This document shows positions 23,042-33,084 of a DNA stretch of 64,000 nucleotides, piece after piece. Position 1 is the first letter of the stretch; every line of letters starts with the position of its first letter. The DNA comes from Macrostomum hystrix. Taxonomy: Eukaryota > Animalia > Platyhelminthes. The stretch spans positions 6,386,001 through 6,450,000 of the forward strand of contig CATNEN010000003.1 of NCBI GenBank assembly GCA_950097015.1, written 5' to 3'. The notes beneath the pieces are model-generated. The model had not been told where the DNA came from. It did not search any database and saw nothing but the letters and a program-made list of their open reading frames with translations. The translations under genes were made by a program, and so were the position numbers.

Positions 23042-24296
23042 GTTTTTAATCGACATTTTGAGCATGCACATTTTAACAGCTTTTTACCGTACAGTACTCA
23101 TTACATACATATGGTACATGTACAGCTCTCGATGAGGCTCTCGATGTTTATATGCGCTTTTAATTTTGCGTGATGAAAAATACATTTCAAATTGCTCGCT
23201 CACAAAAAAAAACTCGCTCGTTCGCTCGATCCGCGCTTGTATGTAGTCAAAGCTTGAAAACAGGAGCTTGGAAAGGAGCAGTGCGCCCGCCTTTATAACG
23301 ACGCTGTCAGTCCGAGGACACTCCCGGGCATCTGCAACATCCAATTTATGAGGGCGGAGATTGGAGAATAATTTTACGCAAACAAACCAGAATTAATTTG
23401 CTGGCACATTGTTTGTGCCTATAACCTAATCTTGTTTGAATAATAATACTCAAGCAAAAATAAAAAATGTCCAAAGAATTAGTCACTGCTACAAGTCATG
23501 TCTATTTAAACTCTCGATCAAAATAATTTCTTGCAGAACCCTATTCACGGCCCCTATTAACAGGTCGTTAATTTCGAGCGGAGCGAAGCGGAGCGAGTCT
23601 TTAGGTTTATGATGCCCCGGTAGGTCTGATGTGCCAAACCCCCCCCTTTTTCTCAGCTCGTACCCTACCGATTTTCTTGGGACTTGCGCCATTCGATTCG
23701 TCGTCGAAAATTAGTTTGGGATCACCAAAACAGACTTGCAACATTTCCATTGCTTCCTGCTCAAAATTGAGTATTTCCCTTTCTGAGCTATTTTTAGCAT
23801 CAAGGTCAGAAGTCAGAGCCTTTTTAACTTTCCTTTCCTTCCTTCCTTAAGGAAGGCAGGCTCCACGCAGCACGGGGGCAGTTAATGTACATTGAATTCA
23901 CTGGCCTAGCACAGCAGCGGGCATCAGCCAGCCAGCCACACTAAGGCTCCCGACCTCCCCTTCGCCCCTTAACCAATTGGCCTGCACTTGCCAAAGCCAC
24001 ACACCACTGACACTAAGGAAGGAAGGCTGGCTGCTATTCAATTGTGCAGCACACACCAACCCCAAATCCTTTCGGGCCAGTTAATGTGCATGTGAAGACA
24101 GAAAACACACAACAACCCCACACCACGCCACACAGCACGAAGCAGCCCACATAAGGACCACCACCACTACTGCAGCGACATTGTTAGCTGATATTGTTGT
24201 ACTGACTTAGTATTATAAAATAATAAATTAGTCTATTAAAATGTAAAAATTAAATAAATTAGTCTATTAAAATGTAAAAATTAAATTAGAAACAAA

Positions 24297-25110
24297 ATGA
24301 GCCCTCCGAAGTTTCCAGCTAGTTGTCCAAAATGTGGACTGTTTTGGAAGAAAGGTCGGCAGTCATGCTGTAGGAGAAGCTGCAATTTCAATTTACTCGG
24401 AGGGCTGAAGGGTCCAGAGTTTGGTGCACGAGGAAAGCAATTTGGCGTTCAAGGAAAACAATTTGGTGAAAAAGGGCGTCGTCAGTTTGGACACGAAGGA
24501 CGTGACTTCGGATTGCTCGTCGGTCGTCGGGTTGCAAGTAAGTTTGTGTTTTTATACTTTCACCACACAAGAGATTAGGGTCCGAGACCCGATGATATAT
24601 TTAATTTCTCTATAACGTTCTACACATGCTCCAGGGAATTCTTCTTCTGCTTCACCTCTGCCTATTTCGCGGCCAAACACGCGTTACGTTTGCTTTGCAA
24701 ACAGTGCGCTCACCAGTCTGATATCCGGCACTGTCCTGGGCCAGTTGGCATCTGACATCGGAGAGCAAGCTACTGCCACGAATGTCGAGTTATTATTGGC
24801 GAATTGTAGCAGATCAGGACAAGAGCAGAATGTGCATCGACTCATCAATGCAGTGGCTGCGGTAGGTGCAGCGGGTCCGCAATTCGTTGTTGGTGAGTTT
24901 GGTGATTGTGCAGAATTTTTGTCGGCTTTGTTGCAGCATCTGGCTGTTGGAACTAGGAGTGATGCTGTACGCCATTTGTTTGAGCTGCCAATTTTTATCA
25001 GGTGTGATACCTGCTTATCAGTGCCATATGAAGGCCGACATTTACTGCTTTCATTGCCAGTGCCTTCGACAGCCAATAGTATGACACTGCAGGATTTAAT
25101 TGTCAGATAG
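24297..25110 (+). CDS. N-terminal part of the element ORF (exons 24297-24537, 24635-25110): Cys-rich head, GKQFG-like repeats and USP/C19 Cys box; ends at an in-frame TAG
   Basis: Donor A|gtaagt at 24538 and acceptor ccag|GG at 24634 join in frame with ORF 24745..25110. Motifs PNTRYVCFANSAL, GDCAEFL, CDTC, LSLP. Confidence 0.7.
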
Positions 25111-28100
25111 ATGACGATTTCTGTCGCACAGCAATGTTGCCCCAATGCCCAGCCAAATTTGGAATTTAACCAAGCACCTAAGCACATAGTAGTTGAGCTG
25201 TCGCGCATTACTGAGTCATTAGAGCCCGTGCGGTCATTAGTAAACTTAGTCGCTGAATTTAGAATTGGAAATCGAGTCTATTATCCTACAGCAGTAGTGC
25301 ATCAAACCGGAAGCCAGCAGCTTGGTACATCACACTTTTTCTGTGATGTGTACAACAACGATTCCTGGTATCGATGTAATGATTTCTCTGTCACATCCAT
25401 CAGCAAGGAAGAAGTTGGCCTCGGCGGCAGAACCTGCTGTCTTTTGATTCTCACAGCTGATCTACACTCATCTCCTTTCTCTGCTAACGTTCAGCAAGTG
25501 CGTTTTAGTAATGCCGCTACTACAAGTGTTCACGCAGATCCACCGGATGCTGCTTCAGCCTCTACGAGTGTTCCCGTGGATTCACCATATGCTGCTTCTG
25601 GTGAAGCTGGTAATGCCTCGCAAGATGCAGCTCCTTTTTGCTCACAGATTTACGACGATGCGCAGCTTCCGTCACGGGCACAACATGCAGCCAACGACAA
25701 CGAAGAGGTTGGTACCAACTCCACCCCCCAGAGGCCTTCTGTGTATGATGAATGGATGATGCAGAAATCGCTACAACCGACATTCAATGATTTCATAGAA
25801 TATCGGCAAATGGAGTTCGACGCGATGCGGTTGCATGCTGATGCTGTCGATTTTAAGAGCTACTTACCAGACTTCAACCCATTTTTGGGCTTAGGAATTA
25901 AATTTGACGCCAATATTGCCGAATACGCGACTTGGAAAAAGTGCAAAGTTTGTGAACGACAGTGGCCCAATCTTGATGTAGACAATAATGGAAAGTGTAA
26001 ATATTGCAGAGTTCCAGACACCCCACTATTTTCACCAGCCAATGGATTCAGTCTGGAAGATGTGCCCCCTGACCTGAATGATCTGACATGCGTGGAGCAA
26101 GCTTTGATCTCGCGGCTGCATATTGTGAAAACGGTATATCTACTGCGTGGATCTTCATGTAACTTAAGCCGTGGTCATTCTATTGCATTTGAGCAGGATG
26201 TGCAAGGGTTTATTAATCGCTTGCCCTGCAGTGCAGCCAACCTGCCTTTCCTCGTGGTGCGGATGCCTGGAACCTGTGTAACCAAGGTTAAAGACTTTCG
26301 AGTAAGGCGACATCGTGTGCTACGAGCACTAAATTGGTTGCGCTTAAATAACCCAGAGTATAAATCTATCGAAATTGACGACCACTTACTTAACACCCTT
26401 CCCGAAGATGGCTGCATTGATGAAGTGCCGCACATTGATATTGGAGTTGAAAATTCAGCCGACTCCGGTCCCAAAGACAGTTCCGACGATATTCATATCG
26501 ATCGGAGTGCCGCTCAGCCAGGTGGGGATTTCTCGGGTCTACGTCAAGAGAAGTTGATTCTAAGAGCTTTGCAGAACATTTCCGTTCCGTACCCAGCTGT
26601 CGGATCACATGCAGTGCAAGAGAAAACCCCTGGCTACTTTACTTGTGCTTTTCCTTGCCTCTTTCCTTACGGCCGATGCGACATCACTCGCAGTGGGCGC
26701 TTGAAACAGCCACAGCTGACAACAGGCACTTATCAGAAATACTTTCAGTTTCTTGTACAGCTCGACAGAAGATTTGCACAGCATCACCTGTTTCCGTTTG
26801 TGGCTGCAAACATGCTGCAGCGTCATCAGGCAATGCAGATCGGTGGAGTGTTCTGCGATCGTGCTGTTGCTGGACTTTCGGCTGAGGAACTGGCTCGACG
26901 TTATCAAAATGGAGACCGAAGTATCATTAACAAGCTGTCACATTTTGCATCTGTAATAAAAGGTAGTCCATCTTACTTTCAACAGATGGCTCGGAAATCT
27001 CTTTCGTACTGTGCCTACAATAGAATTCGTGGCGATCAAATGTTCAACGTTTTCATGACTTTGTCGGCTGCAGATCTGCAATGGAAGGATTTACATCTTA
27101 TTTTAGACAGGGAAAATAATTATGTAGATAAGAACGTGATCCGTCTCGGCGTAGGTGACACGCTGCCTCATGGCAGTCTGGATGCTAAGTCGGATATGGC
27201 GATGCGCATGAATCTGCGAAACAATTCTGATGTGGCTGACTGGTTTTTCTGCGAAAAAGTGCGACACTTCATGAAGCACGTGATTCGTCCTGCATTCGGC
27301 GTCATTGATTTTATTATTCGGTACGAGTATCAATTCAGGGGATCTGTGCATGCTCATATCCTGCTGCAGGTCCCAAATGCTGTGACCGCTGCGGATCTCA
27401 AACTGGCATCGTTACTTTGGAAGCAGCATGCTGGCATGGTAAATTATAACGACGATGAGTCTACGGCCATTCATGAAAGCAAATTGCGATACGAAAAATT
27501 CACGATGTTGATGGGGGTCAGAGCGGTTCATCCGGAGTGCAATGTGAAGCAGTGGCCGCCTCCATTGGGAGAAAATTTTCAGGAACCTCCAGTCAATTGC
27601 CTTCGAATGCGCTATTCAGATGTCGCTGCCAGTGCCAAGGAGCGTTCTGCACTAAAAGACGTTTTGCGTCATGACTACACTCTCTTAACAAACCGAACCC
27701 TGCTTCATGACTGCCGGAAGGGCAAGTCGTCCTGCTTTAAACATAATAGTGATAAGTGCCGTTTTCAGTTTCCTCGTGATTTGGTCGATTATTTTCTTTG
27801 GCCCTGCAATTCTGGCGTTCGTGAAGGAGAATCCAAACCAGAAACTTTTTATCGTAGAGGAGGTACGCACAGTAACATAGTTTTTGACCGGAGTGGGATG
27901 CTTGTAATTCGTAATCACCCTTTCGTTGTTTCACACGTGCCAGAATTAGCGCAAATTTTCAGAAGCAACGTTGATGTCCAGTTGGTGCAATCTTATTCGT
28001 CGCTGCTAAAGTACCTCATGAAGTACACCCTGAAAGGCGAAGGAAGCTCAGATGCATTTTCCGTTATTACTGCCGACGTGCTGAAAAGTTCAAGTAGTGC

Positions 28101-30510
28101 ACTGGATAAAACACGCGCATCTGTGTACCAGAAGCTGCTGATTCAGTGGACTGGAAAGCGCGACTACTCAATGCAAGAAGCATTTCACCTAATATTTAAC
28201 CAACACTTTGTTGAATTCGGACGCGAATTTCGTACGGTCAGCTTGGGTGGTAAGAAACTTCTAGCAAAGAACTCAATTGATTGGGCAGAACTTTACTGGA
28301 GCAAAGACGAAGACCCAAACTTTTTTAATCTCTTGCAAGCTTTTATCAGTGGAGATGTTACTACGGACCCTCGGCTTGTCACATTGTATGAATTTGTGAG
28401 TAGCTACAGTTCCAAGTGGAGGCCACTAGGCAGTGGTGAACGAGGTTCGCACAACACTGCCTACATTCCACATGTGGTGCCTTCAATTGTCAAAGCACCC
28501 GTGAAAGGCTCGCCACAGTATAAACAATTCTGCTGGCAGCAGCTGATTCTGCACCTACCGGGTGCCAAGCCAAGCGAATTAGAAATCGATACAGCCGATG
28601 TGATGCTCGCTGAATTCGTCAAAAACAACTCGAGGTGTCCATCTTATGTTAAGGAACAGTTCTATCAACTTCAGCTGCCGCAGAGGGGACCTAAGAAGGT
28701 TGTCGACGACATTGCAGAAAGAATTATCAATTGTCGTGACGACTCCAATGAAGCTGAACTCGTTCCCGATGATCTTCCCGTGCCAAATAATCTGATTTTC
28801 CAGGCGGACTGGACTGGTGTGCATAGGAATAATCCAAACGAAGAGCTTCAGGTTGACTCCGACGATGAACAAGAGGAGCTGGAAAAAATGGCTCGAGCAT
28901 CTGATTACGCTTGCTGCAATAGAAGGCTCTCTCTTCAGCAAATTGAAGCTGGTGTTCATTGGTTGAAGAATACAACTAAACAGTATAACCAGATTGGTGA
29001 TAAAGCAAAAGTTACCGATGATGTCCACATGATTGACCCAAATTCGCTTAACGTAAAGCAGAGACAGATTTTTACATATATTACACAAAAACTCGATGAA
29101 TATGTCCGTTGCATTGTTGATCTGCAGAGTGAATGGCCTAAACCTATTTATGTTGACATTTCTGGAGCTGCTGGTTGTGGCAAGTCATTCACATTGAAGT
29201 GCATTCTTCAACATCTTACAGAAAGTTTGCGTCAGAGAAGCTCTGCTTCCTTGAATGACAGCTCTGTGGCTCAAGTTGCTGCCTACTCAGGCTGCGCAGC
29301 AAATCTTATTGGTGGTTGCACGCTTCATAGCCTGTTGAGCTTGCCACTGAAGCCTAAAAATATCCAACCGTTATCAGCAGAGCAGCTAGTGCGTTTGCAA
29401 GCGCAGCATAAAAATTTGCGCATGCTGTTCATTGACGAGAAAAGCATGATGGGTAAATTAGCTTTTGCATGCATTGATCATCGGTTGAGAGAGCTTTTTC
29501 CAGCCAATGCAACAAAGCCTTTTGGTGGGATTTCCATCGTTCTGTTGGGTGACTGGTGTCAACTACCGCCTGTGAAGGACACTCCGTTGTTTGCTGAAAA
29601 CCCAAAATACGCCACCAAGATGCACTCTGATGCTACTATTCTCTTCGAGCTTTTCACAGACTGTTTTGAATTAGCTGTCAATGAGAGACAAACGGGCCAG
29701 TCAGAGTTGCAGTTTCGCGATGAATTACAGCGGCTTCGTGATGGCACGTTTACAATTGCCGACTACAGGCATTGGCAGGAGAGACTATTCAACTCTGTTG
29801 CTGTAGATGAGCAGCTGGAATTTGCTGGAGCCACGCACATTTGCATGGTGAATTCTGTCAAGAATGTATGCAATCGAACAGCACTGATTTCAATGCAGGA
29901 GCCTATCATTGGAATTCATTCTTTTAACAGCCGAGGAACTGTGCGCATCGAAGGACTAAGTAATAAACTTTATCTGGCAGTTGGAGCCCAGGTCATGTTG
30001 ACACGCAACATCTGGGTTACTGCTGGTCTGACGAATGGAAGTGAAGGCATAGTGTACGACATCTGTTATCTTCCTGGACGCAGCCCTCCCGATCTGCCTG
30101 ATGTCATTGTCGTGTGTTTTCCTGGATTCTCTGGACCTCCATTCCTGCCTGAAATTGCTCACTCTGTCGCTCTAGTCCCAGTGACGAGCGTGGCAGACGA
30201 TGACACCAACGTCAGATATAGGAAGCAGTTTCCTCTAAAGCTTTCCTTTGCAATGTCAGTACACAAGGCTCAGGGAAAAACGTTGGAGAAGGCAATTTTA
30301 CACCTGGATCGCAGAGAGTTCACACCCGGTCTGTTGTACACTGCCTGCACTCGGACTCGCAGAATACAGGATCTGCTGTTCATGTCTCTGCCGCCTTTCA
30401 TAGTATTCCAGCAAATGGCCCAATCGTCTTCGTTCAGGCTTCGACGAATGGTGTTCGAGCAATTTCACCAACGTTGCAGGATTACAGCGGAACGTCTGCA
30501 ACAGCTTTAA
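25111..30510 (+). CDS. Helitron-type Rep (HUH Y2) / PIF1 helicase protein, preceded by the C-terminal half of the USP domain
   Basis: USP His box (AVVHQTG..GTSHFF..WYRCND). DUF6570-like RVRRHRVLRALNWL..NPEY, FPCLFPYG. Rep motifs FMTLSAAD, EYQFRGSVHAH, YLMKYTLKGE. Helicase motifs GAAGCGKS, FIDEKSM, FGGISIVLLGDWCQLPPV, QFPLKLSFAMSVHKAQGKTL. Confidence 0.93.
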   Translation: MTISVAQQCCPNAQPNLEFNQAPKHIVVELSRITESLEPVRSLVNLVAEFRIGNRVYYPTAVVHQTGSQQLGTSHFFCDVYNNDSWYRCNDFSVTSISKEEVGLGGRTCCLLILTADLHSSPFSANVQQVRFSNAATTSVHADPPDAASASTSVPVDSPYAASGEAGNASQDAAPFCSQIYDDAQLPSRAQHAANDNEEVGTNSTPQRPSVYDEWMMQKSLQPTFNDFIEYRQMEFDAMRLHADAVDFKSYLPDFNPFLGLGIKFDANIAEYATWKKCKVCERQWPNLDVDNNGKCKYCRVPDTPLFSPANGFSLEDVPPDLNDLTCVEQALISRLHIVKTVYLLRGSSCNLSRGHSIAFEQDVQGFINRLPCSAANLPFLVVRMPGTCVTKVKDFRVRRHRVLRALNWLRLNNPEYKSIEIDDHLLNTLPEDGCIDEVPHIDIGVENSADSGPKDSSDDIHIDRSAAQPGGDFSGLRQEKLILRALQNISVPYPAVGSHAVQEKTPGYFTCAFPCLFPYGRCDITRSGRLKQPQLTTGTYQKYFQFLVQLDRRFAQHHLFPFVAANMLQRHQAMQIGGVFCDRAVAGLSAEELARRYQNGDRSIINKLSHFASVIKGSPSYFQQMARKSLSYCAYNRIRGDQMFNVFMTLSAADLQWKDLHLILDRENNYVDKNVIRLGVGDTLPHGSLDAKSDMAMRMNLRNNSDVADWFFCEKVRHFMKHVIRPAFGVIDFIIRYEYQFRGSVHAHILLQVPNAVTAADLKLASLLWKQHAGMVNYNDDESTAIHESKLRYEKFTMLMGVRAVHPECNVKQWPPPLGENFQEPPVNCLRMRYSDVAASAKERSALKDVLRHDYTLLTNRTLLHDCRKGKSSCFKHNSDKCRFQFPRDLVDYFLWPCNSGVREGESKPETFYRRGGTHSNIVFDRSGMLVIRNHPFVVSHVPELAQIFRSNVDVQLVQSYSSLLKYLMKYTLKGEGSSDAFSVITADVLKSSSSALDKTRASVYQKLLIQWTGKRDYSMQEAFHLIFNQHFVEFGREFRTVSLGGKKLLAKNSIDWAELYWSKDEDPNFFNLLQAFISGDVTTDPRLVTLYEFVSSYSSKWRPLGSGERGSHNTAYIPHVVPSIVKAPVKGSPQYKQFCWQQLILHLPGAKPSELEIDTADVMLAEFVKNNSRCPSYVKEQFYQLQLPQRGPKKVVDDIAERIINCRDDSNEAELVPDDLPVPNNLIFQADWTGVHRNNPNEELQVDSDDEQEELEKMARASDYACCNRRLSLQQIEAGVHWLKNTTKQYNQIGDKAKVTDDVHMIDPNSLNVKQRQIFTYITQKLDEYVRCIVDLQSEWPKPIYVDISGAAGCGKSFTLKCILQHLTESLRQRSSASLNDSSVAQVAAYSGCAANLIGGCTLHSLLSLPLKPKNIQPLSAEQLVRLQAQHKNLRMLFIDEKSMMGKLAFACIDHRLRELFPANATKPFGGISIVLLGDWCQLPPVKDTPLFAENPKYATKMHSDATILFELFTDCFELAVNERQTGQSELQFRDELQRLRDGTFTIADYRHWQERLFNSVAVDEQLEFAGATHICMVNSVKNVCNRTALISMQEPIIGIHSFNSRGTVRIEGLSNKLYLAVGAQVMLTRNIWVTAGLTNGSEGIVYDICYLPGRSPPDLPDVIVVCFPGFSGPPFLPEIAHSVALVPVTSVADDDTNVRYRKQFPLKLSFAMSVHKAQGKTLEKAILHLDRREFTPGLLYTACTRTRRIQDLLFMSLPPFIVFQQMAQSSSFRLRRMVFEQFHQRCRITAERLQQL

Positions 30511-33084
30511 AGTGAGCATTTTTATTCCTTTTGAACGCTGTCCAGGATTTTAGCTTTTGAGGCGCTCATGGAATGTGGGGTCGGGTCGCCATGAATTCAG
30601 TTAACTCACGAATTACTACCTTGGCTTCCTCATACTTCTCTCGTATTTATTTCAATTGGTGAAACTACTGTAGTCGTCATTCCTCGCGAACTACAGGCAC
30701 TCATCAGCAGCAGCAGCAGCATCACTATGGTCAGCCGAACAAACAGCACCCGACAGTTGCACGGTGTTAAGCAGGACTCTGAACTGATTCTCAGACAGTG
30801 CTTTCGACCAGCTAATAAGGCCCGACTGACTGACTTGCAATTCGACCTGATGACCAAGGCTCTGGATAGCTGGATGTCTATGTCTATGACTATGACTAAA
30901 TTACTATGAAAATGACACTGACTTTGACTATTAACGCTGACTATGACTATGGCCATGTATACACAACTCTAAACCTATTTGCACTATTTGCAATCTTTAT
31001 GATAGGTGGCTAATGAGATTATTGAGTCCATCCCATTCCCAAATGGGGAAAGATCTGTCACTTCTGTCATAGCTGTCAGGGGAACTATCGTAATGCAGTT
31101 CCTCACGCTCCGCTCGTTTTTTTATTTCAATTGGTGAAACAATTGAAATAACTTCAGTGTATGCTATTTATCAACTTAAAGTGATCTGCTTCACTGCGAA
31201 TCTCGCTCCACTCCAAATCAGTGGGCCACCCAAATCATATTTCTAATACTAATACTAATAGGGCGTCTAGACTAAATTTAAAGTTTTTTGAAGTTCAGTT
31301 ATCTTAAAAGTCTAATCAGTTAGACTTAACTAGTGACTAAGGTCCAGATGCGCGCGCGCCCGCCAAACTGGTTGCCACTAAGTCAAGCGTAATTTAAGCA
31401 AATATTTTATACATGATTAATACAAAACTTTGGTACGAAAATGCAGTATATATGAGACGACTTTGAATAATTATATTATAATAACAATTTACAACAAAAA
31501 TTTTGACTTCAATACCAATTAAAAATATAATAACGATTTCATTACAATATTGCAGTTATTAAAAAATGCTAACAAGCTCAAAAGGTTACAACATGCATTT
31601 TACATAATTTTTTTCCTGCTTATGTCCTAACGACATCGGTTCCATTTTCAAACAAGAAGGCTCGACATCATTTTTCGAAATATTATTGTAGTTTGTCTAG
31701 ATGATGACCTTCTTCAATTTGCAAGTAACAACTAACAATTAATAGTAAACTTTTAGACTAAAATTCCCATGTATAGCTGTCGATATACATGTTACATAGA
31801 ATTCAAAGCAGGTCTTGTACCTAACTAAAATGTAACGCTTTGAATCTAATTAATAAAAAAACTTTTTTGAATCGACTAGCTTACTTATTAGATATAATTA
31901 ATTTAATTTCTTACTGGTTTTAAGGCTCCAAAAGACAAAACAAAAACAAGCAAAACAAAACAAAAATATTGAAATAGAACCCATTTTAGGCCTATATATA
32001 TTTCTGACTGAATTCAGAATAAATTGGCAAATTCACTCTTCATTTAGCTATTTCTAATCATTTTTACCTAGGGCCTACCTAACATTTTTGCCCCTATGCC
32101 ACCTACTCTTAATCTTAATATATTCTCTTGAGAATAAATCCCTATTGGAATAAATTTTCTTATCCTATGGACACTGACATTTAGGATGGGTTTATAAGCA
32201 TTATTTAAACATTTCAAAGTTGTGTTGTGTAGTGCATAAGTTTAACCAAATTTTGTAGTAGATGGTTGTACACGATTCACTCAGTTATTCTAATAATTAA
32301 TAGGGAGAATAAATTAGGGCCTAGCCTATCTGCTTTTTACCCTATTTACTTTTTAGCAACCCATGTTAGCCTTTCTGTTGCCAAACAATCAATTGCTTTC
32401 ACAAAAAATCACATTGTTTCTTGATCAATCTGATCTGATATAGTTCATGACCCTTGGCCCTTAGACCCATGTGGGCCTATCTAAATTTGTGGCTAATCCT
32501 AATATGATGATAATAACTTAATGATAAACATTAACTTATCTAAAAATATGTAGACTGTGGTTTATAGGCAAATAGGCATATCCTAATAAATATATATTCA
32601 TTATTTTATATTTTTAGGCTCCAGTTCAATAAAGATATTGAACTTGCTGTATATTTCAAATGAACTTATTTGTTGCTGGCCTTCTGATTTATCATAGCCC
32701 TATAATCAATGTGTAGGCCTATGGCTAATTTAATATTCTAACTTTATGCTCACAACATGCTAGGGTAATGTATCATCAACCAAACAGTGTATCTTCAAAA
32801 CCAAACAAGAATTTTGACTCCTTCCTTGGTCTTGTGCAAGACAGAAACAAGCTATTGTATTTCACAGAACAACTATTTTGAATATCAATGAAATTATTTA
32901 TACAAGCTAAGGCATGAAATGTGCCAATGAAGCAATAAAAGGAAAGAAAGATATGGATGTTTCAGTAGAAATTTTTATCACAAAAGCATACTTTTTAACA
33001 GCATCTTTTCAGCATGTACTTTAGACTAAGATTGTATGTGGTTGCTTTCCAATTAAATTACCATAAATGTAGTTATTTATAGAT

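Follow-up and report, generated by a model that had tools for sequence, protein, structure and literature searches.

The stretch of DNA analyzed here (the window; 64,000 nt of Macrostomum hystrix contig CATNEN010000003.1) contains a Helitron-like, HLE2-type rolling-circle transposon, low-copy and single-gene, in which a true USP-family domain (peptidase C19; Pfam UCH) is fused to the RepHel protein, a fusion of which we are confident. The reading that best explains the whole, and to which we assign a probability of roughly 60%, is that of a recently active HLE2 element with a USP-RepHel transposase acting as a tethered deubiquitinase. This is not a new kind of system, UCH having been catalogued in this Helitron class in 2024 (PMC11417382); what is new is the flatworm host, the in-frame UCH-RepHel fusion, and a minimal USP that has diverged very far yet keeps its triad intact.

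The window copy of the full-length HLE2/Helitron2-type element spans positions 23569 to 31242 (7674 bp) on the forward (+) strand, on which all features described below also lie; the genome has five full-length copies, this one included. Comparison of 30-kb neighbourhoods by blastn places the start of homology with the other four copies at 23567-23569 and its end at 31242-31246, beyond which the flanks are unrelated. Identity between the window copy and its four siblings is 99.2-99.4% (blastn), and each of the five aligned copies has 5-8 private substitutions per 7.65 kb. The family is very young and recently active, and we count its recent copying as established. Judged from their sequence, the ends of the element look HLE2/Helitron2-like, and the termini are the same in all five copies. 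The 5' terminus, TAATTTCGAGCGGAGCGAAGCGGAGCGAG (23569-23597), holds GAGCGGAGCG-type repeats, inverted copies of which recur near the 3' end as two matches, one of 11 nt that pairs 23575-23585 with 31106-31116 and one of 8 nt at 31202-31209. The first of these forms part of a subterminal segment (31106-31151) in which CGCTCCGCTCG is followed by a hairpin with a perfect 12-bp stem (31122-31133/31140-31151); the second, CTCGCTCC, opens the 3' terminus (31202-31242), which continues with a short GTGG-G-CCAC hairpin and ends in ...CATATTT. Features expected of the HLE2 group are a short inverted repeat linking the 5' end to a subterminal 3' position, a 3' stem-loop, and insertion between T and T. 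Every copy begins with T and ends with TTT, as a T|T target would allow, the boundary given here being approximate.

A single gene encodes, in this order, the USP domain, DUF6570, an HUH Rep endonuclease, and a PIF1 helicase. The USP domain (24637-25461; about 275 codons, recognized by motifs, Pfam, and predicted fold) is joined by a low-complexity Ser/Ala/Pro/Asp-rich linker (25462-26010; 185 residues in the protein) to DUF6570 (26017-26391; PF20209, E 9.9e-27, ORF residues 303-427), whose position upstream of Rep is a proposed marker of HLE2 (PMC11417382). The Rep domain (Helitron_like_N, 26740-27432; PF14214, E 3.8e-22, residues 544-752), which is accompanied by a weak REP_ORF2-G2P match (PF23343, residues 715-774), occurs in one ORF with the PIF1-type SF1B helicase (29137-30360; PF05970, E 2e-23, residues 1343-1548), as in RepHel proteins, and the helicase also matches Pif1_2B (PF21530, 1613-1649) and UvrD_C_2 (PF13538, 1712-1750). 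The initial annotation had called this region a rolling-circle transposon, an assignment that the combination of Rep, PIF1, and DUF6570 upholds and refines to HLE2-type. No match to an AP-type endonuclease (Exo_endo_phos, PF03372) was found in the 1958-residue protein, and the stop codon is followed by 730 bp without a long ORF; because the C-terminal AP-type endonuclease is absent, the element is Helitron2-like and not a Helentron.

The USP motifs, their order, and the coordinates of the Cys and His codons given in the initial annotation are all recovered in the reading frame from 24637. In this frame, the Cys box reads RPNTRYVCFANSALTSL, with the catalytic Cys codon at 24691-24693 (Cys19), and fits the pattern N-x4-C-[FY]-x-N-[SA] (PNTRYVCFANSAL), the Asn four residues before Cys being kept. 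The His box reads YYPTAVVHQTGSQQLGTSHFF (catalytic His codon 25333-25335, His233), WYRCNDFSV holds the Asp codon (25381-25383, Asp249), and between the Cys and His boxes the same frame contains, in order, GEFGDCAEFL, RCDTC, LLLSLPVP, and APKHIVVELSR. Within a 14-sequence USP alignment, the only invariant columns are His233, Asp249, P181, and R190, and the Cys boxes of 10 USP proteins line up with that of the transposon domain. The QQD of the "QQDAxEFL" box is replaced by FGD; in the zinc ribbon, the first pair (CDTC) is present and the second CxxC pair is shrunk to adjacent CC ("QQCCPN"). As its primary structure reads, the domain is a minimal, very divergent USP with the triad intact.

A premature TAG (25108-25110) interrupts the domain in the window copy, and the long ORF is listed only from 25111, which is how the ORF track came to hide the domain, as had been pointed out. 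The pieces on either side of the TAG were searched apart, and both are sub-threshold against PF00443 (profile 5-108, E 0.02; profile 197-243, E 0.017) because the stop cuts the domain; the whole frame was represented by a naturally unbroken sibling locus, which scores 40.2 bits (E 4e-10, profile 5-243 of 254) against a cut-off of 23.9. Genome-wide, a PF00443 scan recovers five of five copies, the window copy included, at 35.5-36.9 bits, again over the cut-off. The sub-threshold scores of the window copy, together with a phmmer search of the PDB that found no chain with the single USP-domain sequence as query, might be taken to mean that the motifs resemble a USP by chance, but its two halves keep a collinear order along the profile, the sibling exceeds the curated cut-off, and the predicted fold matches USPs with a Z score of 21 over residues 13-275. 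On these grounds, we reject chance resemblance, whose probability we regard as close to nil.

In the AF2 model (pLDDT 73, pTM 0.73; residues 39-65 of low confidence), the transposon domain has the predicted thumb-palm-fingers USP fold. Compared with its best structural matches, USP12, USP46, and USP2, the model gives Z scores of 20-21 and an rmsd of 3.1-3.8 Å over 231-246 aligned residues, and with USP12, USP46, USP2, USP15, USP21, and USP30 together it gives Z scores of 19-21 over residues 13-275, bearing in mind that the input alignment was made of USP proteins and may bias the model towards a USP fold. Foldseek matches the model to solved USPs (E 3e-14, probability 1.0), and the look-alikes of the domain in the ESM-Atlas are all UCH clusters. 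A profile of the 14-sequence alignment matches every USP, which is not independent support because 13 bona fide USP rows dominate that profile. As in the compact cores of USP12, USP46, and USP2, the Cys box of the domain is followed by the zinc-ribbon position, the His box, and then the Asp, but the domain is only 17-23% identical to these cores and about 60-80 residues shorter; unlike them, it has no full CxxC...CxxC zinc site and carries FGD for QQD.

At 25108-25110, all four siblings have TGG (Trp), as do contigs from four public runs (alignment column 25109, A/G/G/G/G), making the TAG private to the window copy. One copy has an unbroken 1958-codon frame spanning USP, DUF6570, Rep, and PIF1, which substantiates the earlier claim of a USP/C19 domain in frame with RepHel; its catalytic Cys, His, and Asp are all present. 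Stops in the other four copies (W158*, Q179*, E984*, and G1511*) are each private, and the common source frame was therefore open throughout. The window copy further has a private Leu-to-Pro change in its USP domain (25024-25026) and a 31-bp AT-rich tandem duplication a short way 5' of the putative start codon (24222-24252), which is absent from all four siblings and also skipped by contigs from two public runs; with the private TAG, the Leu-to-Pro change, a 3-bp deletion, and this duplication, the window copy is dead.

The gene probably consists of two exons, a short one at the 5' end and one of 5.9 kb. The putative exon 1 (24297-24537; ATG plus 80 codons plus 1 base) has a Cys-rich, basic product with an LLGG motif at residues 33-36 and, searched apart from exon 2, gave no Pfam match. 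It is followed by a putative 97-nt intron (24538-24634) with a 5' GTAAGT, a pyrimidine-rich tail, and a 3' AG, inside which falls an in-frame TAA (24611-24613), and the putative splice preserves the frame (241 nt + 2 nt). In the exon-2 frame, no Met precedes residue 149, which lies downstream of the catalytic Cys, and exon 1 is therefore needed as the source of a start codon. Public sequencing-run contigs that match the element are of DNA type, none being on record as RNA. The transposase would be one polypeptide of about 2040 residues, probably produced from the spliced short 5' exon and the 5.9-kb exon.

Within such a polypeptide, the most likely role of the tethered USP would be to strip ubiquitin, or else a ubiquitin-like modifier, off the transposase or off proteins close to the intermediate of transposition or replication. 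Deubiquitination would spare these targets proteasomal turnover or ubiquitin-dependent repair and silencing signals, a job that has also been proposed in print for VTD and OTU domains elsewhere in HLE2. Catalytic activity on ubiquitin and a benefit to transposition are somewhat favored. The altered boxes could also be read as those of a pseudo-enzyme or of a module that binds ubiquitin or a ubiquitin-like protein and guides RepHel to chromatin, PCNA, or replication factors that carry ubiquitin: the QQD box has lost its Gln (FGD), the fingers have a degenerate zinc ribbon, and the domain is unusually short (about 260 residues) and very divergent, scoring 36-40 bits where host USPs score 100-240. 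A four-Cys zinc ribbon in the fingers is common but not universal among USPs, and the zinc-binding cysteines are absent from several active USPs. Inactive USPs usually are without at least one of the Cys, the His, the Asp, and the upstream Asn; in the transposon domain, however, Cys, His, Asp, and the Asn four residues before Cys are all kept at aligned positions, and we regard a noncatalytic role as unlikely.

A different use of an active protease would be in cis, with the USP cutting the polyprotein, in the manner of papain-like or USP-fold proteases of viruses, and so freeing RepHel or trimming its own N terminus. In viruses, DUBs often have a second function as polyprotein proteases (PMC9741609), and the LLGG of exon 1 is similar to the LxGG sites cut by viral USP-fold proteases, but about 0.5 LxGG is expected by chance at this protein length and the motif is thus not significant. 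The 185-residue linker between USP and DUF6570 contains no LxGG or RGG sites, and the one further LxGG falls within the helicase core; the absence of LxGG between USP and Rep weakly disfavors self-processing at that junction, and we consider a processing protease very unlikely.

Helitrons capture host gene fragments, and the USP could be a neutral passenger, i.e., a captured fragment that is still open in a young family and of no use to the element. The domain is confined to one family of five near-identical copies in this genome, and no close relative was found elsewhere. The initial annotation had suggested measuring dN/dS on the USP; among the five copies, there are about 20 nonsynonymous versus 7 synonymous changes (omega about 0.8), a neutral-looking pattern that offers no evidence of selection but is also uninformative on selection acting on the USP because it is what post-insertion decay is expected to produce. 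Against a passenger stand the lack of a host parent gene, the completeness of an intronless, in-frame domain with its catalytic residues intact, and the recurrence of the same Pfam family at a conserved position in other HLE2 (PMC11417382), which together lead us to view this explanation as quite improbable.

No host locus in the M. hystrix genome matches the USP domain at E<=0.001, and host USPs score 100-240 bits against PF00443 compared with about 36 bits for the transposon domain. An exhaustive phmmer search of 1.84 billion representatives returned 17 matches, the best about 30-35% identical; the three long proteins among these matches consist of several USPs in tandem and are not fusions to RepHel. 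The missing host parent, the low score relative to host USPs, and the best match of about 30-35% speak against recent capture of a host gene. Because the domain is complete, intronless, in frame, and intact in its residues at <=35% identity to known USPs, long maintenance is the more plausible history than fresh capture. A word-indexed search of long proteins, with the USP region as query, gave no match at E<=0.001, a result that says little given that this search needs a length window and shared words. The nearest RepHel proteins are 26-29% identical and show no PF00443, a rescan at lenient thresholds also being without UCH, and a scan of metagenome contigs yielded no relatives.

The initial annotation had regarded USP as an uncatalogued accessory domain, and this part does not stand. 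HELIANO (Li et al., NAR 2024, PMC11417382) lists UCH as one of 20 domains stably included in Helitron-like elements, nearly confined to HLE2 and enriched in its subgroups c and d. The annotation had itself allowed that an existing catalogue of USP-RepHel families would remove the novelty, which is largely the case because HELIANO lists UCH in HLE2 and deubiquitinases were shown by Erven et al. (Nat Commun 2022, PMC9741609). The published UCH-HLE2 cases are mostly from lungfish and axolotl, flatworms being unmentioned in the paper's text, and that paper reports no catalytic-residue, fold, or activity analysis of UCH (PMC11417382). Like the HELIANO elements, which carry PF00443 at a fixed position relative to RepHel, the present one combines DUF6570, Helitron_like_N, and PIF1; but whereas HELIANO places UCH among 17 domains whose coding frame is separate from that of RepHel ("encoded in different ORFs"; PMC11417382), here it shares the uninterrupted RepHel frame, and the host is a Macrostomum flatworm. 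The catalogue is thereby corrected in this detail, at least for this flatworm family, and the known hosts of UCH-bearing HLE2 are extended to flatworms.

Other ubiquitin-system proteases occupy comparable places. The VTD domains of Helentrons are active DUBs, proposed to shield transposition proteins from ubiquitin-dependent degradation; OTU domains fill the same niche in Helentrons, the activity of transposon OTUs being untested; and Helitrons have been argued to benefit from DUB activity drawn from different DUB classes (PMC9741609). As with VTD (Herpes_teg_N-like; zebrafish DrT1/DrT2), a papain-fold cysteine DUB domain is built into an HLE2-group RepHel, but the class here is USP/C19, the AP endonuclease of the VTD elements has no counterpart in this one, and DUB activity was shown biochemically for theirs and is predicted for ours. 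Likewise, the OTU elements (Helentrons and Helitron2, plus some HLE1) have a ubiquitin-system cysteine protease attached to RepHel, with an OTU fold in place of the USP thumb-palm-fingers fold. Why rolling-circle transposons keep gaining such proteases is a question already posed (PMC9741609), for which this family offers a compact, young study case: one gene, a 275-residue USP core, and five copies in which all damage is private. It suits tests of the DUB activity and the linkage or modifier specificity of a RepHel-borne USP and of transposase stabilization.

We tentatively raise the possibility, itself rather doubtful, that USP is a third non-homologous DUB class, after OTU and VTD, that was independently recruited to the HLE2 N terminus, here in flatworms and without relation to the cases from lungfish and axolotl. 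If so, sister HLE2 families within one genome would differ in the DUB class that they carry at the same position (USP and a weak OTU-like match), and a tethered deubiquitinase would come close to being functionally required when HLE2 elements transpose in animals, rather than being cargo picked up now and then. In the second HLE2 family of the M. hystrix genome, a weak OTU/otubain match occupies the equivalent position, on the N-terminal side of DUF6570, and a RepHel relative from the sponge Oscarella carries an OTU.

The initial annotation proposed that a rolling-circle transposon carries a USP-type (peptidase C19) deubiquitinase domain in frame with its Rep-helicase (RepHel), and translation of the forward-strand frame from 24637 confirms the USP motifs in the expected order: the Cys box RPNTRYVCFANSALTSL (Cys codon 24691), GEFGDCAEFL, RCDTC, LLLSLPVP, APKHIVVELSR, the His box YYPTAVVHQTGSQQLGTSHFF (His codon 25333), and WYRCNDFSV (Asp codon 25381). 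In the window copy, this domain is interrupted by a TAG at 25108-25110; the mechanical ORF list therefore begins its 1799-codon ORF at 25111, splitting and hiding the domain as had been suspected. The remainder of the long ORF contains DUF6570, Helitron_like_N, and PIF1 (Pfam). Scanned separately, the pieces on either side of the TAG yield weak, collinear matches to Pfam UCH (PF00443; profile 5-108 at E 0.02 and 197-243 at E 0.017). A naturally unbroken sibling (L018:7101-8000, minus strand) matches the same profile at 40.2 bits (E 4e-10, profile 5-243 of 254), above the cutoff of 23.9 bits. When the whole genome is scanned with PF00443, each of the five copies of the element appears as a single continuous match of 35.5 to 36.9 bits, and host USP genes score 100 to 240 bits.

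An exhaustive phmmer search of the domain against 1.84 billion representatives returned 17 matches at E<=0.001, all of them USP proteins (23-35% identity); the same kind of search of the single domain sequence against the PDB found no chain. When aligned with 13 of these 17 proteins, the element's Cys falls in their Cys box, and the catalytic His (H233) and Asp (D249) occupy invariant columns. The AlphaFold2 model (pLDDT 73, pTM 0.73; residues 1-14 and 39-65 poor) matches solved USP cores in Foldseek (E about 3e-14, prob 1.0) and, over model residues 13-275, in VIA-align (Z of 21.4 for USP12, 21.2 for USP46, and 20.8 for USP2; rmsd 3.1-3.8 A over 231-246 residues), a fold agreement that is to be read in light of the model's dependence on an alignment of true USPs. 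The look-alikes of the domain in ESM-Atlas are all UCH clusters.

VTD domains of Helentrons have been shown to be active deubiquitinases (K48/K63/K11), OTU domains have been noted at the same place, and Helitrons have been proposed to profit from deubiquitinase activity suppliable by different classes (PMC9741609, Nat Commun 2022). By analogy with VTD, the USP domain would most likely (we put the probability at roughly 55%) act as a tethered, active deubiquitinase shielding the transposase, or factors close to it, from turnover or signaling that depends on ubiquitin. It is possible, alternatively, that the domain is a pseudo-enzyme or ubiquitin reader, given the replacement of QQD by FGD in the "QQDAxEFL" box and a degenerate zinc ribbon whose second pair has shrunk to CC.

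The USP segment is present in five copies (98-100% protein identity) in the genome (220 Mb, 42 contigs). An intronless HSP70 encoded in this assembly matches Macrostomum lignano proteins at 95% identity and the other listed hits at 84% or less, in line with a Macrostomum-type flatworm as host. Comparison of 30 kb around each copy shows homology (99.2-99.4% identity) starting at window 23567-23569 and ending at 31242-31246 between unrelated flanks, which delimits an element of 7.67 kb (window 23569-31242). Four of the five copies contain a single premature stop, different in each (W158* in the window copy, Q179*, E984*, and G1511*), and the fifth has none. Of the five copies, only the window copy has the A at 25109 that creates the TAG; the codon is TGG (Trp) in 4/4 siblings, and G at this position also occurs in contigs of four public runs from two studies. 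Because each stop is private and one copy is unbroken, the common source had an uninterrupted frame that included the USP domain, the helicase, and all between them, placing the domain in the RepHel frame as proposed. With only 5 to 8 private substitutions per copy over 7.65 kb, the burst of copying must be very recent. The window copy also has a private 31-bp AT-rich tandem duplication (24222-24252) shortly upstream of the putative ATG, absent from contigs of public runs X1 and X6, and lacks a GAA triplet between 27209 and 27210 that is present in 4/4 siblings and 4/4 public runs, an in-frame one-codon deletion in the Rep region. Among the five copies, the length of a poly-C run close to the 5' end (23638-23641) differs by 0 to 3 extra C.

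The domain content (DUF6570, HUH Rep, and PIF1 helicase), with no Exo_endo_phos domain in the element protein by Pfam and no room for a further gene, and the termini fit the HLE2/Helitron2 pattern: the 5' end (TAATTTCGAGCGGAGCG...) is matched in inverted orientation at 31106-31116 and 31202-31209, a perfect hairpin with a 12-bp stem lies at 31122-31151, and all copies begin with T and end with TTT, which is compatible with a T|T target. A few shorter genomic pieces have the termini alone in common (87-96% identity). One unit of about 880 bp (G000:C1:24310155-24311037), combining the 5' end (96% identity) with part of the 3' end (94%), is probably a short nonautonomous derivative, and further solo ends (87-94%) occur on contigs C38, C37, and C1.

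Upstream, a TAA at 24611-24613 closes the exon-2 frame, in which the first Met (residue 149) lies downstream of the catalytic Cys, so a complete USP domain requires an upstream start. A plausible splice model, predicted from sequence, would supply it: a putative exon 1 (24297-24537) is directly followed by a canonical GTAAGT, the 97-nt putative intron closes with a pyrimidine-rich stretch followed by AG (24633-24634), and the join preserves the reading frame. In public sequencing runs, the element was found solely as DNA-type contigs. Exons 1 and 2 were searched separately, unjoined; the exon-1 peptide has no Pfam match and displays a C-x2-C...CC-x3-C cysteine pattern and GxxFG repeats. Its single LLGG motif (residues 33-36; window 24393-24404) resembles the LxGG sites cleaved by USP-fold viral proteases, as might be expected if the domain processed its own polyprotein; this is less likely, however, since about 0.5 such motifs are expected by chance in a protein this long and the linker between USP and DUF6570 contains neither LxGG nor RGG.

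The domain does not look like a fresh capture from the host genome: a protein search of the genome returned the five element copies as the sole matches at E<=0.001, and the domain departs much further from the Pfam profile than host USPs do. Differences among the copies are about neutral (roughly 20 nonsynonymous versus 7 synonymous events), which is the expectation of postinsertion decay and carries no information on selection in the active lineage. The closest RepHel proteins in databases (26-29% identity) include one sponge protein with OTU and none with PF00443, and a metagenome scan for relatives found nothing. Separately, faint UCH matches (26-28 bits) covering the C-terminal His-box part of the profile occur at G000:C3:15620707-15620814 and 15644793-15644894, within very long open frames of 3108 and 2571 aa.

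The view that USP is a nonstandard, uncatalogued Helitron accessory domain does not hold, as HELIANO (PMC11417382, NAR 2024) lists UCH as one of 20 domains "stably included" in Helitron-like elements, almost exclusively in HLE2. With this listing and the deubiquitinase proposal of PMC9741609, both architecture and functional idea are prior knowledge. In HELIANO, however, UCH is among 17 domains "encoded in different ORFs" from RepHel and is enriched in subgroups c and d, mostly of lungfish and axolotl, whereas the present element has UCH within the RepHel frame and a flatworm host; the literature searched contained no further paper linking Helitrons to USP/UCH and no flatworm case. New at this locus are the flatworm host, a fusion that is demonstrably in frame, a minimal, divergent USP core whose triad is intact, and a family so young that every defect is private.

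The same genome contains another HLE2 family, a distant relative (31% identity over the Rep region; ORFs up to 2091 aa), with two copies in head-to-tail order, separated by about 5.8 kb, on contig C38 (G000:C38:21969629-21974149, L025:2130-6650; and 21975425-21981700, L023:1926-8201) and one on C24 (L024:1987-6234). Within its N-terminal extension of about 650 residues, residues 339-432 weakly match otubain C65 (E 0.002) and OTU (E 0.004); this stretch corresponds in position to the USP domain of the family studied here.
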